Shown: one piece after another, positions 48,321-60,466 of the stretch
How the letters are laid out: every line of letters starts with the position of its first letter
How positions within the stretch are numbered: position 1 is the stretch's first letter
DNA from: Obrimoposthia wandeli
Lineage: Eukaryota
Assembly: GCA_977020255.1 (NCBI GenBank)
Contig: CDROCS010000998.1
Coordinates: 124,001-188,000, forward strand
Direction: 5' to 3'
DNA length: 64,000 nucleotides
Program-made: the position numbers and the translations under genes
The notes under the pieces: generated by a model
The model's input: only the letters and a program-made list of their open reading frames with translations
Database searches by the model: none
Told to the model about the DNA's origin: nothing

Positions 48321-49157
48321 GCATAATTAAGTCTGACATACAAAATGCGCCTGTATCGCAAAGTTATGCAGAAGTATAGGCGTTGTTGCAAATAATGCAG
48401 ATTTACGGGCTTGCTGCAAATAGTCAGGGTAGCTCTATCCGAAATCTGTTTTTATGGTCAAAACGCCTTCAATGCCCTGCGAATTCCCTCATTTGTTGAT
48501 TCATCCATAATGAAACAGATCAAAATGATGTTTTACATTGAGCTTTTCTTGATGGATAGCAATCTTTCAGATTCCTATCCATAAATGCCAATTATGTGGA
48601 ATGTACGGAATTACTCGCAAAAATGGGACTTTCGAAAAGAAACTTTATAGCACAGCACTTTTCAAACAAATCCAGGTAGAAAAACGCTCTTTTTGAGTTG
48701 GAAATTGATTACAGAATCTTTTTGATTTACATATTCAACTTTCCCATCCTGAAGCTCACACAAAAAACATCGTTAAGATGTCTACTTTTATTATCAATCA
48801 AAACATCAATATTAGTTACCCAAACCAATTGGTCGTTAATACCTATCAGTATCCAATCATCAATCACAAAATTACATGCCACTTACGTATGCCATGCCGT
48901 CTGCGCCACATAGGTTATGAATTTAGAGTATCTATTTGGCTGTCACCTCAGAATTAATCTCTAACATTTATTAGATGGACAGATAAATAATCGTGTATCT
49001 TTTATGACACGAAATAACAGTGACAGCGTAACAATAAGGGGATTTATATTACTGGATAGATATAAATTAACGAACGTAAGTATTCTTAAAGAAAGCTAAT
49101 GTGTCAGAAATAACTCTGCCTGCCAAGATCGTGTAGACACGTCGTTGGACAGAGCCC

Positions 49158-50455: not shown

Positions 50456-50468
50456 GGCTCTGTTGCAA
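50456..50468 (+). repeat. Isolated IS6-family terminal inverted repeat
   Basis: GGCTCTGTTGCAA with no transposase behind it. Confidence 0.7.
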
Positions 50469-50472
50469 CCAT

Positions 50473-51699
50473 TTAGATACAACATTTTTTATATTTCTTA
50501 CCAGAACCACAAATACATGGCTCATTTCTACTAACCTTTGCTTTGTTATGAATATAAGGTGTCTTTTCTTCTATATTCAGATGAAATGGATCCGTATCTG
50601 ACAAATCAAAATGAATGGGTTCTTGACGTGAGTGGCTTACCGTTATTTTTTTGTTTACAGAAACTTTATTACATTCAAATAATTCAGTTTTCGAAATGAT
50701 TACAGGGGAAATATTGTTATCAACAATTAATAACACCAATCGTTGATAAGCATTTGTTTCGTAACATAAAGGATCAATAACGATATTAGACAGTTCAAAA
50801 GCTTCTTTTTGCTTTTTGATATTAAATCCAGTAATTTCGGCTGGTTTCATACCATTATCGCAATGCACAAAAGCAAGTCCAATGTGCTTAGGTAACAAGC
50901 ATGCTAGATTAAGAGCATTTGGATCTTCAATAATTTTATTGAAGAGCACGTCATGCATCATTTGATAATCTGTCTCTTTATATTCAACCACCTTAGATAT
51001 CGACACATCAATATCTAAGGTTGAGACTTGATTGAAAGGGTCATCTGAAATTGGAGTTAAGCCCTTAAATTCATGTATATTTAAATTTTCTAACGGAGTG
51101 ATATTAGCAAGGATCTCTTCATTGCTGGCGGTGATATTTATGAGTGGTACATAATGAGGGTAATTGTAGTAAATTTCATTTTTATAAGCTGTCTCAATCT
51201 CACTATAACCCTTACCTGGTATGCTTAATTTCATAGCACTCAGTTTCTCGTACACTTTAACCATAAAATTAAAGATCACGGGCTCGATATTATAATAGTC
51301 ACCGAAATCGACAAGCTGCGATTGGATTTTTGAAATTTTTTCTTTTTCACCAGAGTCGATAGTTGGCTCTGCATTAATCGCTAAGTTAACAGTTTTCTTT
51401 TCTATTAAACAGATACGTAAAAGATCAAGTTTATTGGCTTGTGCAAACTGACGATCGACTGCATAAGCTTTACCCATAAAATCATCGCTATGTACCGAGT
51501 AGTTTCGAAGAGCTTTAAGTAATAAAAATTCATCTAAATCAAAAAAACCACGGTTCTTTATCGGTGACTTTCTGAGACGTTCATGAACTTTGTAAGCTTC
51601 TTCCGTAAGTGACTGTAAAGCAGTTAAATCTGATTTAGCTGTATATTGATAGTAAATATCAAATAAGCGGCCAGCAGCGGGCTCAATGATGAATATCAT
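50473..51699 (-). CDS. SEC-C motif-containing hypothetical protein
   Basis: C-terminal SRNEPCICGSGKKYKKCC; very AT-rich. Confidence 0.8.
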   Translation of the reverse strand: MIFIIEPAAGRLFDIYYQYTAKSDLTALQSLTEEAYKVHERLRKSPIKNRGFFDLDEFLLLKALRNYSVHSDDFMGKAYAVDRQFAQANKLDLLRICLIEKKTVNLAINAEPTIDSGEKEKISKIQSQLVDFGDYYNIEPVIFNFMVKVYEKLSAMKLSIPGKGYSEIETAYKNEIYYNYPHYVPLINITASNEEILANITPLENLNIHEFKGLTPISDDPFNQVSTLDIDVSISKVVEYKETDYQMMHDVLFNKIIEDPNALNLACLLPKHIGLAFVHCDNGMKPAEITGFNIKKQKEAFELSNIVIDPLCYETNAYQRLVLLIVDNNISPVIISKTELFECNKVSVNKKITVSHSRQEPIHFDLSDTDPFHLNIEEKTPYIHNKAKVSRNEPCICGSGKKYKKCCI

Positions 51700-52036: not shown

Positions 52037-52621
52037 TTAAATTACTTCATCAAAGCATGCTGAATCTAAAATCTCACCTACAACATCATTAAAATTTAAT
52101 CCAAACTCTTCAGCTGCCATCGGGAACACACTCCGCATTGTCATTCCAGGCACAGTGTTCATCTCGATAAGATTCACTTCATCATTCTCATCCAAAATCA
52201 CATCAATCCGCCCCCAACCACGACAGCCTAGAGCTTTATAAGCCTTTAAAATGATTGATTGCATACGTGATTGCTGTTCAATCGAGAGATCGCATGGGCA
52301 ATGATATGTAGCACTTTGACTACCAAATTTCGCATCAAAATCAAAGAAAACGTCAGATTTTATTTGCACTACAGGTAAAGCTTTATCGCCTAGAACAGCA
52401 CAAGTATATTCTCGGCCAGTTATAAACGACTCAACCAAAACAGTATCATCGTACTCAAATGCATTAATGACCGCGTCGAATAGCTGGTCTTTAGTTTCGA
52501 CTTTACTAATACCAATACTACAACCTTGTGTTAATGGCTTAACAACGACTGGGCATATTACTTGCGACAATATTGCTTCAAGTTTTCCCTCTGGCATATT
52601 CTTATTTACTGTCAACCAATC
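52037..52621 (-). pseudogene. ddl: D-Ala-D-X ligase (Ddl family) C-terminal half, 5'-truncated by IS6
   Basis: PVVVKP..QGCSIG, VESFITGREY, LGCRGWGRID, EMNTVPGMT; homology stops at the IS6 repeat at 52622. Confidence 0.85.
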
Positions 52622-52676
52622 GGGTCTGTTGCAACTAATCAGGTAAGGCATATCTACCCAGTGATGGGCTCAATGA

Positions 52677-53414
52677 TTACTGGTAAACAACCTCAACATT
52701 GAAGAGGCGATTCATGACGGCGGATCTCTCCCGAACAAAAGTTTTACGTTCGTCATGACGTAACCAACAATCAAATTGCCTCTTGTTCAACATCCGTAAT
52801 GATTCGAATCCTTGGATCGTTGACCAAGTTCGTTTTTGTATTTTAAACCCACCGGTGGCGACAACGAGTTTCTTTATTGGGGCGTGATCAGACTCGATAC
52901 CGTTATTGAGGTACTTCACTTGCCGCTGCTCGACATCCGCTCGCAGTCGTCCCTCTTTTTTCAAGCGAGCAATAGCATTCGCATATGAGGAATGCTTGTC
53001 AGTGTTTAACGTTTTAGGCTGACTGTCTATGTCGTAATATCTCAGGCAACGCCTAAGAAACTGATAAGCGGCTTCTTTATTACGTTTGTGGGAGAAATAG
53101 AAATCCAGCGTTTCGCCTTGTTTATTGATAGCACGGTAAAGGTAGTGCCATTTCCCCTTCACTTTTACGTAGGTTTCATCGAGCTGCCACGAAGAGTCTG
53201 TCCGGATAAATTGATGGCGACGTAACTTCTTACGTAATGTCGGGGCATATTCAATGAACCAACGATAAATGGTCGAACGATTAACCGAAATCCCCCGCTC
53301 TGCCAGCATGTCACTGAGGTTTGCGTAACTCATCGGTGTTGAACCATACCACCGAAGGCACCAAAGGATGATTTCAGGGGCGAAGTGTTTCCATTTGAAT
53401 TCGGGGTTGGTCAT
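52677..53414 (-). CDS. IS6 family DDE transposase
   Basis: WQLDETYVKV, NTDKHSSY, LNNGIESDH. Confidence 0.96.
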   Translation of the reverse strand: MTNPEFKWKHFAPEIILWCLRWYGSTPMSYANLSDMLAERGISVNRSTIYRWFIEYAPTLRKKLRRHQFIRTDSSWQLDETYVKVKGKWHYLYRAINKQGETLDFYFSHKRNKEAAYQFLRRCLRYYDIDSQPKTLNTDKHSSYANAIARLKKEGRLRADVEQRQVKYLNNGIESDHAPIKKLVVATGGFKIQKRTWSTIQGFESLRMLNKRQFDCWLRHDERKTFVRERSAVMNRLFNVEVVYQ

Positions 53415-53519
53415 CGAGTTGCTGGATTGGATGGGAAAGAAGGAATTCTGAGCCCAGACTGAATTATTTGCAACATATATGAACCATCCCTATTTGCACG
53501 CTAATTTTTAGTGATGTTG

Positions 53520-53655
53520 CTCTAGATCTAAGTTGCAGTCATATATTCGGCATCTAAGTTAAACTTGTGCCCTGATGTAAATCCGCACTCTTCTTCCTCA
53601 TCAGAGCCATGGCCTCAAACGGCCGTGTTGCAAAACAGGTTTTAGAAGAGCAGGT
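53520..53655 (-). ncRNA. Predicted bridge RNA/seekRNA of the IS1111 element
   Basis: Target guides at 53626-53634 and 53602-53608 and donor guides at 53573-53580 and 53540-53546, each pair separated by a stem-loop. Boundaries approximate. Confidence 0.75.
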
Positions 53656-53745
53656 ATGACCTATCGTTCATCATTAAAATTAACTCACGCAAACTTGTTG
53701 AAATTACTGTCATTTAGTTAATGTTAGACTACTTAATATTGTGTA

Positions 53746-54792
53746 TTAGGCAGCCACCGTTTTATTGTTGAGATCAAATTCATTTCCCGTATTCAGAATA
53801 GACCAGATAATCCTGGCATTCTTATTTGCTAGTGCAACCGCTGCTTTGTTAAAACTAAGCGAACATTTCTTCTGTGTTAACCAACGGCCATATTCGTTAT
53901 CTAAGTTTTTACACTTCGATAAGGCGGCTCTGGCACCGTGAATGAGCAGCGTTCGCAGGTATACATCGCCTCGTTTGCTGATACCCAACAAAATCTGTTT
54001 GTCTCCGCTTGAATGTTGCCTTGTCACTAGACCAAGCCATGCAGACATATGTCGACCATTCTTAAATACATGTGGATTTGGAACAGCGGAAATCATTGCT
54101 GTTGCTGTTAGCTCACCCACGCCGGGTATTTTCATTATTCGTTGGCAGGCTTCATTCTGACGACAAATCTGTTTGACCTTTTTTTCTAAATGTTTCAATT
54201 TCCCTTCAATATCGACTAATTCATTGTAGAGGTCACTCATGAATTCGCGAGACGATACTGTCAATTCATTGTTTTTATCAGAAATAATCAAACAAAGCTC
54301 TGCTCTAATCTTTGATGCTCCCGTTGGAATCGCGATCCCATACTCCAAATTGAGTCCTCTAATCTCATTAATCAGTGCTGTTCTATTTTTAACTAATCGG
54401 CTTCTAATTCGATGTAGAGACTGTATATCTTGTTGTTCAACTTGCTTGATAGGAACGAAATGCATTGACGGTCTGCTGGCTGCTTCAGTGATGGCTTCGG
54501 CATCATTCGCATCATTTTTGTTTGTTTTAACAAACGGCTTTACGAACTGAGGACTAATGAGTTTCACTGTATGCCCTGACCATTGAAAGACGCGAGCCCA
54601 ATAGTTGGCTCCTCCACAAGACTCCATGACAATCGTGCACGGTGGTATGTTAGCGATATATTCAGCCAATTTACCTCTTGATAGGCGCTTTTTTAAAACA
54701 GCTTTACCATTATAATCAACACCATGCAGTTGAAACATATTCTTAGCAATATCAATACCCAGTAAGTTAATGATCATCACTCTATCTCCCAC
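53746..54792 (-). CDS. IS110/IS1111 DEDD recombinase (transposase)
   Basis: LGIDIAK, VMESCG, KNDANDA (RuvC-like DEDD); Tnp domain WLGLVTRQHSSGDK with the conserved Ser. Confidence 0.96.
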   Translation of the reverse strand: MGDRVMIINLLGIDIAKNMFQLHGVDYNGKAVLKKRLSRGKLAEYIANIPPCTIVMESCGGANYWARVFQWSGHTVKLISPQFVKPFVKTNKNDANDAEAITEAASRPSMHFVPIKQVEQQDIQSLHRIRSRLVKNRTALINEIRGLNLEYGIAIPTGASKIRAELCLIISDKNNELTVSSREFMSDLYNELVDIEGKLKHLEKKVKQICRQNEACQRIMKIPGVGELTATAMISAVPNPHVFKNGRHMSAWLGLVTRQHSSGDKQILLGISKRGDVYLRTLLIHGARAALSKCKNLDNEYGRWLTQKKCSLSFNKAAVALANKNARIIWSILNTGNEFDLNNKTVAA

Positions 54793-54878
54793 TTATCAAT
54801 TAATTGCTTATTAATTGTCACCATAATCATAGCCTGGCGGGGCGTTATGGAGTGGGATGATTCATTACATTAGAGCCG

Positions 54879-54907
54879 ACTTCACTTGCCGCTGTTCGAC
54901 ATCCGCT
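54879..54907 (-). mobile_element. 29-bp internal fragment of an IS6 transposase gene
   Basis: ACTTCACTTGCCGCTGTTCGACATCCGCT matches the transposase interior of both IS6 copies with 1 mismatch. Confidence 0.7.
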
Positions 54908-55126
54908 TGTTAATCAAAAAATCAAACATAAGACGATAACACCGAATAAAAAAGCATGTTGGTATGTTTTGTTTTTGTTCTTCTTCACTGTTGAACGGCA
55001 TGTAAGCCTAGTTGCGTGACGTTCAGCATTTAAGGTATAACGGGGATAATATATAGGGGTCATAGTTACCAGCTCCTTATTCTTTATATGTTTATTATCT
55101 AAAGATTTACCGGAATAAAGAACGAT

Positions 55127-59604: not shown

Positions 59605-60466
59605 GGGTCTGTTGCAACTAATCAGGTAAGGCAGATCGACCCCAGTGATGGGCTCAATGATTACTGGTAAACAACCTCAACATTGAAGAGGCGATTCATG
59701 AAGGCGGATCTCTCCCGCACAAGAGTTTTACGTTCATCATGACGTAACCAACAATCAAATTGCCCCTTGTTCAACATCCGTAATGATTCGAATCCTTGGA
59801 TAGTTGACCAGGCTCGCTTTCGTATTTTAAACCCACCGGTGGCGACAACGAGTTTCTTTATTGGGGCGTGATCAGACTCGATACCGTTATTGAGGTACTT
59901 CACTTGCCGCTGCTCGACATCCGCTCGCAGTCGTCCCTCCTTCTTCAAGCGAGCAATCGCATTGGCGTATGAGGAATGTTTGTCGGTGTTTAATGTTTTA
60001 GGCTGATTGTCTACGTCGTAATATCTCAGGCAACGCCTAAGAAACTGATAAGCGGCTTCTTTATTACGTTTGTGGGAGAAATAGAAATCCAGCGTCTCGC
60101 CTTGTTTATTGATAGCACGGTAAAGGTAGTGCCATTTCCCCTTCACTTTTACGTAGGTTTCATCGAGCTGCCACGAAGAGTCTGTCCGAATGAATTGATG
60201 GCGACGTAGCCTCTTACGTAATACTGGGGCATATTCAATAAACCAACGATAAATGGTCGAGCGATTAACCGAAATCCCCCGCTCTGCCAGCATGTCGCTG
60301 AGGTTCGCGTAGCTCATTGGTGTCGAACCATACCAACGAAGGCACCAAAGGATGATTTCAGGAGCAAAGTGTTTCCATTTGAATTCTGGGTTGGTCATTG
60401 AGTCGCTAGATTAGAGAGGGAAAAGAAGGGATTCTGAGCCTTGGTTAAATTTTTTGCAACAGACCC
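59605..60466 (-). mobile_element. IS6-family element copy 2, intact (862 bp)
   Basis: GGGTCTGTTGCAA at 59605 and TTGCAACAGACCC at 60454-60466. Confidence 0.95.
59661..60398 (-). CDS. IS6 family DDE transposase
   Basis: 245 aa, near-identical to 52677-53414. Confidence 0.96.
   Translation of the reverse strand: MTNPEFKWKHFAPEIILWCLRWYGSTPMSYANLSDMLAERGISVNRSTIYRWFIEYAPVLRKRLRRHQFIRTDSSWQLDETYVKVKGKWHYLYRAINKQGETLDFYFSHKRNKEAAYQFLRRCLRYYDVDNQPKTLNTDKHSSYANAIARLKKEGRLRADVEQRQVKYLNNGIESDHAPIKKLVVATGGFKIRKRAWSTIQGFESLRMLNKGQFDCWLRHDERKTLVRERSAFMNRLFNVEVVYQ

Follow-up and report, generated by a model that had tools for sequence, protein, structure and literature searches.

The closest described counterparts of the element reported here are insertion sequences of the IS1111 family such as ISEc11, ISPa11 and ISKpn4/ISPst6, which encode a DEDD recombinase (Siddiquee et al., 2024, PMC11187229). 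Their subterminal inverted repeats of 11-13 bp carry terminal extensions of 7 bp on the left and 3 bp on the right, a long non-coding region lies downstream of the recombinase gene, a promoter has been described at the junction of the circularised element, and excision was reported to require flanks that match the guides of the RNA (PMC11187229). This RNA, called seekRNA or bridge RNA, has been located in the right end of IS1111-group elements (Durrant et al., 2024, PMC11208160). Here we describe an intact IS1111-family element in a 64,000-nt stretch of the Obrimoposthia wandeli assembly (GCA_977020255.1, contig CDROCS010000998.1, positions 124,001 to 188,000 of the forward strand; hereafter the window, whose own coordinates are used throughout). 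The element splits the terminal repeat of an IS6-family insertion sequence, and its right-end non-coding region in all likelihood encodes a seekRNA or bridge RNA that guides insertion into IS6 ends.

The element and the repeat that it splits

The element occupies positions 53476-54872 on the minus strand and is complete, with a length of 1397 bp. Its termini were placed by comparison with 28 relatives, in which they are invariant while the flanks differ; as the same termini occur in different surroundings, these relatives represent independent insertions. The recombinase gene (53746-54777, minus strand) encodes 343 amino acids when read from the ATG at 54777, which is preceded by GGGAGA and is the likely start codon, the mechanically called open reading frame (ORF) beginning at a GTG at 54792. 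A length of 343 residues is also the modal value among the best 8,000 database matches, of which 7,999 lie at E <= 1e-30 and which extend into the broader IS110/IS1111 family. The product carries the Pfam domains PF01548 (DEDD_Tnp_IS110, 6.9e-17) and PF02371 (Transposase_20, 4.9e-23), and the combination of a DEDD (RuvC-like) N-terminal domain with a C-terminal Transposase_20 domain, in a protein within the 330-350 amino acids expected, identifies it as a recombinase of IS1111 and the IS110 superfamily. Its C-terminal domain is homologous, and can be aligned, to those of the solved IS621 and ISCro4 structures.

The ends follow the published IS1111 rule (PMC11187229). At the left end (54855-54872, minus strand), which is nearly invariant among relatives, a 7-nt extension TAATGTA (54872-54866) precedes the subterminal repeat ATGAATCATCC (54865-54855); at the right end (53476-53489, minus strand), conserved in the alignment of non-coding regions, the repeat GGATGGTTCAT (53489-53479) is followed by a 3-nt extension ATA (53478-53476). 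The two repeats are 11 nt long and complementary at 10 of 11 positions. Downstream of the recombinase gene lie 270 nt of non-coding DNA (53476-53745), against 95 nt upstream. When the ends are abutted, TA from the right end and TAAT from the left end form a perfect TATAAT box, which sits 16 nt past the hexamer GTGCAA, a position at which most relatives have TTGCAA. The window holds a single copy of the element.

The split host is an ISPpr9-like IS6-family element (52622-53475, minus strand), an environmental member of the family and neither IS6100 nor IS26. Its transposase gene (52677-53414) encodes an IS240/IS26-type DDE domain (PF13610, 2.6e-58). Removal of the insert restores an element of 859 bp bounded by the terminal repeats GGGTCTGTTGCAAC and GGCTCTGTTGCAAA; the domain, a size close to the 0.8 kb or so of IS6 elements, and 14-bp repeats of the GGnnCTGTTGCAAA type together assign it to the IS6 family. 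It starts at 52622 with GGGTCTGTTGCAAC, and its other end is broken after TTTGCAACA, so that the inner 9 nt of the repeat lie at 53467-53475 and the outer 5 nt, GAGCC, at 54873-54877 (both read on the plus strand).

An intact sister copy of this IS6 element at 59605-60466 is 93.5 % identical to the split copy, and 92.6 % identical to an ISPpr9-family copy on a plasmid of Photobacterium profundum SS9. Its end reads TTTGCAACAGACCC uninterrupted, which shows that the insertion was precise, 5 bp inside the IS6 repeat, and produced no target duplication. This precision in the window copy, and an insertion polarity that is the same in 29 loci, agree with the site and orientation specificity of IS1111 elements. 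The reconstructed 14-mer GGCTCTGTTGCAAA is identical over 14/14 positions to the published IS6100 repeat (PMC10470526) and over 13/14 to GGCACTGTTGCAAA, the repeat of IS15-delta-I and IS26-type elements (PMC5328509), as the initial annotation had proposed.

Guides, fold and covariation of the predicted right-end RNA

The initial annotation had read the non-coding region as a guide RNA programmed against an IS6 repeat, and the motifs that it quoted are all found where it placed them on the minus strand. The 5' target guide, UUUGCAACA (53626-53634), would pair with TGTTGCAAA on the strand that runs in the direction of the recombinase gene, and equals the plus-strand flank at 53467-53475 at 9/9 positions. 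The 3' target guide, GGCUCUG (53602-53608), would pair with the opposite strand, CAGAGCC, and its first 5 nt repeat the sequence immediately outside the left end, GGCTC. The two guides jointly spell GGCTCTGTTGCAAA, overlapping by 2 nt at the insertion point. The agreement of 7/7 first reported for the 3' guide holds against the reconstructed empty site, in which the CA of the left half is joined to GAGCC; at the real junction, where the element's own TA precedes GAGCC, it falls to 6/7.

Finding such a 9-mer and 7-mer in a 270-nt region is expected by chance at about 1.6e-5, and the comparative data on the flanks presented below make a chance origin of these motifs untenable. For the fold, we aligned the non-coding region of the window with 22 related ones and computed an RNAalifold consensus on these 23 sequences. 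The structured core (53523-53663, minus strand) consists of an outer 6-bp stem (53663-53658 with 53528-53523) enclosing two stem-loops. Over its 35 pairs, 96.6 % of alignment cells are standard pairs, and 13 pairs show compensatory change, against one to three when partners are slid by 1-3 columns; none of 500 shuffles reached the observed values. These changes preserve seven helices while the loops vary.

The first stem-loop (53587-53651, minus strand) holds the target guides. Its 8-bp stem, in which GCUCUUCU (53651-53644) pairs with AGAAGAGU (53594-53587), includes six pairs with compensatory change; the inner CCU/AGG pairs and the capping hairpin GGCC-GUUUGA-GGCC are conserved, and the only hypervariable bases of the whole RNA are the two sides of the internal loop, that is, the guides themselves. 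The second stem-loop (53535-53586, minus strand) has the same build, and from its sequence we interpret it as the donor-binding loop, with guides UUACAUCA (53580-53573) and AUAUAUG (53546-53540). Two stretches within these correspond to the element ends: UUACAU is the complement of ATGTAA in the left end, and AUAUA repeats the final 5 nt of the right end. Both donor guides and both element ends are invariant in 23 relatives.

Forty-five related loci were collected by a scan of one genome per species, and L046, L048/L049, L093 and L097 were added through the two closest proteins and a metagenome scan; the latter, run with a 17-mer around the 5' target guide, returned 105 loci, three of them real elements and the remainder chance matches. 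Nineteen independent insertions had both flanks readable. Among these, the seven variable bases of the 5' guide match the reverse complement of the right flank at 123/133 positions (mean 63 and maximum 108 when permuted), and the three variable bases of the 3' guide match the last bases of the left flank at 55/57 (mean 32, maximum 47). For either guide, none of 100,000 permutations reached the observed value, and roughly half the mismatched positions could form G-U wobbles. At least nine distinct versions of the 3' guide occur, every one of them in agreement with its own flank.

In the subgroup with a TTGC-type 5' guide, the 3' guide reads GGCUC, GGUUC, GGUUG, GGUUU, GGGAU or GGGCU and the left flanks read likewise, with 23/24 positions matching, a value equalled by 46 of 100,000 permutations. 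Close relatives, which add the 3' guides GGGAU, GGGCU and GGCGU, differ only in their guides, and the flanks track them (GGGAU with GGGAT, GGGCU with GGGCT). The element at L097 has guides identical to those of the window copy on an RNA scaffold that differs in hairpin and stems. It interrupts an IS6 end, with GGCTC on one side and TGTTGCAAA on the other. The transposase of this IS6 element shares just 49.5 % identity with that of the window host, and the far end of the element is an intact TTTGCAACAGAGCC. Identical guides thus turned up at the same 14-mer of a different IS6 element and not, as the initial annotation had considered, in unrelated sites. The fold and the covariation between guides and targets, which it had named as checks, likewise agree with it, and its proposal of a seekRNA or bridge RNA programmed against IS6 ends is now supported by the recombinase domains, the element ends, the two kinds of covariation and the donor loop. 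These sequence comparisons make it very probable that the element represents a natural RNA-guided recombinase directed to IS6-family ends.

IS6 ends as probable targets, and competing explanations

The neighbour on the right-end side is recognisably of the IS6 family in 16/29 loci, judged by an IS6 transposase (Pfam or tblastn) or by similarity in nucleotide sequence to an element confirmed as IS6. For most of these 16 the IS6 element begins at the junction or within a few tens of bases of it, and in two (L007 and L024) 85-165 bases in. Inserts are found at either IS6 end, always with the right end toward the IS6 interior. The sites fall into three groups, GGnnnTG+TTGCAAA (the type of the window), GGTTnTG+TCGCAAAG in other Photobacterium species, and GGTAYTG+ACAAGTTAAC in Halieaceae and related metagenome-assembled genomes (MAGs); by sequence, each group corresponds to the repeat of a different IS6 subgroup.

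Insertions into structures resembling miniature inverted-repeat transposable elements, with IS6-type inverted repeats and no transposase gene, occur at L007 (+1 to +232), L005 (+1 to +610) and L031 (+1 to +121). A metagenome contig (Ga0316197_10001572, L093:10750-14688) carries a nested array of a full IS1111 relative with the 3' guide GGCGU, an IS6 element with a transposase 96 % identical to that of the window, a second IS1111 copy cut mid-gene exactly at the far end of this IS6 element and with its RNA intact (GGGCU), and then another IS6 element. The truncated copy indicates that IS6 elements also cut into IS1111 elements of this clade. Among PLSDB plasmids we found no full-length relative, and no clade member inside IS26 or IS6100. 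A left-end fragment is present in Aliivibrio wodanis, and a decayed 569-bp relic on a Vibrio maritimus plasmid (NZ_CP090440.1, 58051-58619, L051) retains recognisable target and donor loops but neither the recombinase gene nor the right end.

A sister clade (L025, L026 and L028), with recombinases 50-54 % identical and the same RNA layout, lies inside IS3-family transposase genes; in L026 the element ends near 1406 and 2797. The left flank encodes HTH_21 and rve domains and ends in ...PGKPxxNGxxE, and the right flank, SFNGRLRDECLN..., corresponds to positions 22-67 of the rve_3 profile. The same protein motif is interrupted in three MAGs that differ at the DNA level, which places the insertion point immediately behind the conserved ...NGxxE, a motif that includes the third acidic residue of the catalytic DDE triad. 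Homing to other insertion sequences may be a trait of the lineage. We suggest tentatively, at somewhat below even confidence, that this IS1111 branch is specialised as a parasite of other insertion sequences, using IS6 repeats with guides retuned for each variant, and IS3 genes in the sister clade, whose recombinase is about 50 % identical.

A number of observations nevertheless weigh against RNA-guided insertion into IS6 ends, and they bear on different parts of it. Concerning the RNA itself, the fold of the single window sequence is no more stable than its shuffles (z -0.24); this score is uninformative, and evidence on the fold therefore requires the alignment. An Rfam search of 53300-55100 in a permissive E-value mode returned only noise, release 15 seemingly being without a model. 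No promoter-like site was found inside the non-coding region (53476-53745), which fits co-transcription of the RNA with the recombinase gene, and the -35-like hexamer GTGCAA of the window copy is weaker than the TTGCAA of its relatives. Of 17 RNA runs four were examined and none had RNA from the host genome: two yielded no match, one contained the left end of a relative at about 95 % identity, and one, a sediment metatranscriptome, contained relatives at about 90 %, which may include DNA. The missing Rfam match and the lack of host RNA among the runs examined would suit an explanation at the DNA level, in which no guide RNA takes part and the internal flank copies serve as binding sites for protein or represent captured target DNA. 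We regard this as highly improbable, since compensatory changes hold seven helices while the loops vary, as expected from selection on an RNA fold, and since the two guides, although encoded on a single strand, correspond to opposite strands of the site, an arrangement shared with experimentally verified seekRNAs and bridge RNAs.

The exchange point is a further difficulty. One crossover dinucleotide is common to all four guides: the 5' guides terminate in CA and the 3' guides in UG. Nearly every copy has TG at the right junction (53474-53475 in the window; AG in L031), and TA occupies the left junction wherever the left end could be read (54871-54872 in the window), so that the first base pair of the element after the shared T faces C or G in the guides. 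Given this mismatch of TA with the UG/CA of the guides, a simple 2-bp shared core does not account for the exact exchange point, which leaves two readings: exchange with the T alone in common, or a donor recognised by way of a mismatch or wobble. The left-end TA also supplies part of the circle-junction TATAAT box.

Concerning the target, GGCTC is present only at the occupied end of the host IS6 element, its other repeat (52622) and the sister copy reading GGGTC, and in 13/29 loci there is only a repeat-like flank of 12-17 nt and no recognisable IS6 element beside it. Among these 13 are short derivatives bounded by repeats, for example one of 610 bp in L005. It could then be argued that the recombinase recognises its 14-nt sequence anywhere, IS6 ends merely being the commonest carriers and the link to them incidental. 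The RNA guide does read only about 14 nt, and two loci (L013 and L030) have poorer flank matches. However, recombinases that differ by up to about 30 %, with guides that differ at most variable positions, still use sites of the form GGnnnTG followed by TTGCAAA, TCGCAAA or ACAAGTTAA; random reprogramming would not remain on IS6 ends; and in the 16 loci with an IS6 neighbour the insertion lies, with one orientation throughout, at the genuine end of an IS6 element or of a short derivative. We therefore consider an incidental link unlikely, and favour IS6 ends as the target class proper.

The surroundings of the window copy bear on whether the element is still active. The 8-bp target duplications of IS6 elements are absent around both copies in the window, which is compatible with later IS6-mediated rearrangement, and one base outside the split repeat a 29-nt fragment (54879-54907) is 28/29 identical to the IS6 interior at 52913-52941; together these point to IS6-mediated rearrangements. 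We also considered GAGCC as part of this fragment and rejected the idea, as it needs two substitutions and an indel and as the 5-nt rule holds in every relative. An ORF at 52037-52651, overlapping the left IS6 repeat, encodes only the C-terminal domain of a D-Ala-D-Ala ligase, and the gene appears to have been cut off by IS6 insertion or rearrangement. Orphan IS6-type repeats lie at 48351-48392; the relic at 48351 resembles the TGTCGCAAAGTTAT-type repeat that flanks two Photobacterium relatives (L002 and L029), and immediately after it comes GGCGTTGTTGCAAATAATG, identical to the site that the L093 guides prescribe. Finally, an unoccupied GGCTCTGTTGCAAC at 50456-50469, which agrees with the 3' guide throughout and with the 5' guide at 8/9 positions, adjoins an ORF with a SEC-C motif (50473-51699).

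It is conceivable, though on balance rather unlikely, that the window copy is a fossil, its match recording a past insertion by an element that is now immobile. There is a single copy in 64 kb, its -35-like hexamer is weak, its surroundings are heavily rearranged, with the missing duplications and the 29-nt fragment just described, and both the perfectly matching half-sites at 50456 and a near-match at 60453 are unoccupied. Against this, nothing interrupts the 343-aa frame, the two ends and the two RNA loops are intact, and guides and flanks still agree perfectly, an agreement that is reported to be necessary for excision (PMC11187229). The window copy may still be mobile.

Proposed mechanism and relation to known systems

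By homology with ISEc11, ISPa11, ISKpn4 and IS621, the following cycle can be drawn. The element would excise as a circle, whose junction promoter TATAAT would transcribe the recombinase gene together with the downstream RNA; the RNA would then be trimmed and bound by the DEDD/serine recombinase. The guides of the first loop would pair with opposite strands of the 14-nt site GGCTC^TGTTGCAAA, with a 2-base overlap at the crossover, while the invariant second loop would pair with the joined ends of the circle in the same geometry. Strand exchange would place the circle 5 bp inside the IS6 end, with the right end toward the IS6 interior and without duplication. That the RNA is made, is bound by the recombinase and directs recombination is what we infer from the published family members. 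As excision needs matching flanks (PMC11187229), near-perfect agreement between guides and flanks would be under selection. By moving the outer 5 bp of the repeat 1.4 kb away, the insertion probably disables that IS6 end.

IS6-family elements (IS26, IS6100, IS257/IS431 and IS1216 among them) are the main assemblers of multi-resistance regions. If this IS1111 branch is indeed specialised on other insertion sequences, nature already offers a programmable recombinase against the repeat of IS26, IS6100 and IS257-type elements, and the TA/TG asymmetry would point to an exchange geometry unlike the 2-bp shared core of IS621. A natural RNA-guided recombinase that splits IS6 ends is a candidate scaffold with which IS26-type ends might be tagged or inactivated, and the relatives constitute a ready-made data set on natural guide reprogramming. 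It would also reveal a new ecological interaction, in which one transposon preys on another. The known mechanism itself is left unchanged by the finding.

Indeed, mechanism and architecture are already known from IS1111 elements with seekRNAs or bridge RNAs, and it is the target class that appears to be new. The DEDD recombinase, the 7-nt and 3-nt extensions and the downstream non-coding region are those of ISEc11, ISPa11 and ISKpn4/ISPst6, and, as in the seekRNAs of these elements, two short guides address opposite strands, overlap at the insertion point and are naturally reprogrammed among relatives (Siddiquee et al., 2024, PMC11187229). The guide order, with the top-strand match 5' of the bottom-strand match, is also that of all tested IS1111 seekRNAs (PMC11187229). 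The targets of those elements, however, are a short linear site, REP sequences or attC sites, and not the terminal repeat of an IS6-family element. The ISfinder recombinase set of that study contains no close relative and lacks the clade motif NYWARVF; the nearest named element in the set by motif sharing is IS1111A. No IS1111 or IS110 element homing to IS6 repeats was found by full-text literature searches or in the bridge RNA and seekRNA papers examined, a coverage that lies outside the curation of ISfinder and TnPedia.

Similarly to IS621 of the IS110 group (Durrant et al., 2024, PMC11208160), a single RNA carries a target and a donor loop, each with two opposite-strand guides that have a crossover dinucleotide in common. 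Unlike in IS621, the RNA lies in the right end and not in the left end upstream of the gene, the guide order is reversed, the subterminal repeats are long, and at the left junction the DNA of all copies has TA in place of the TG equivalent that the guides call for. Conceptually, the nearest precedent is provided by IS4321 and IS5075, which, as far as they are summarised in PMC11187229, are IS1111 elements that split the terminal repeat of another transposon in one orientation (Partridge and Hall, 2003, as cited in PMC11187229). There the target is the 38-bp repeat of Tn21-family (Tn3-type) transposons, whereas here it is the 14-bp repeat of an IS6 element; homing to IS6 ends, if confirmed, would thus extend the single classic case of IS4321 and IS5075 in Tn21 ends.
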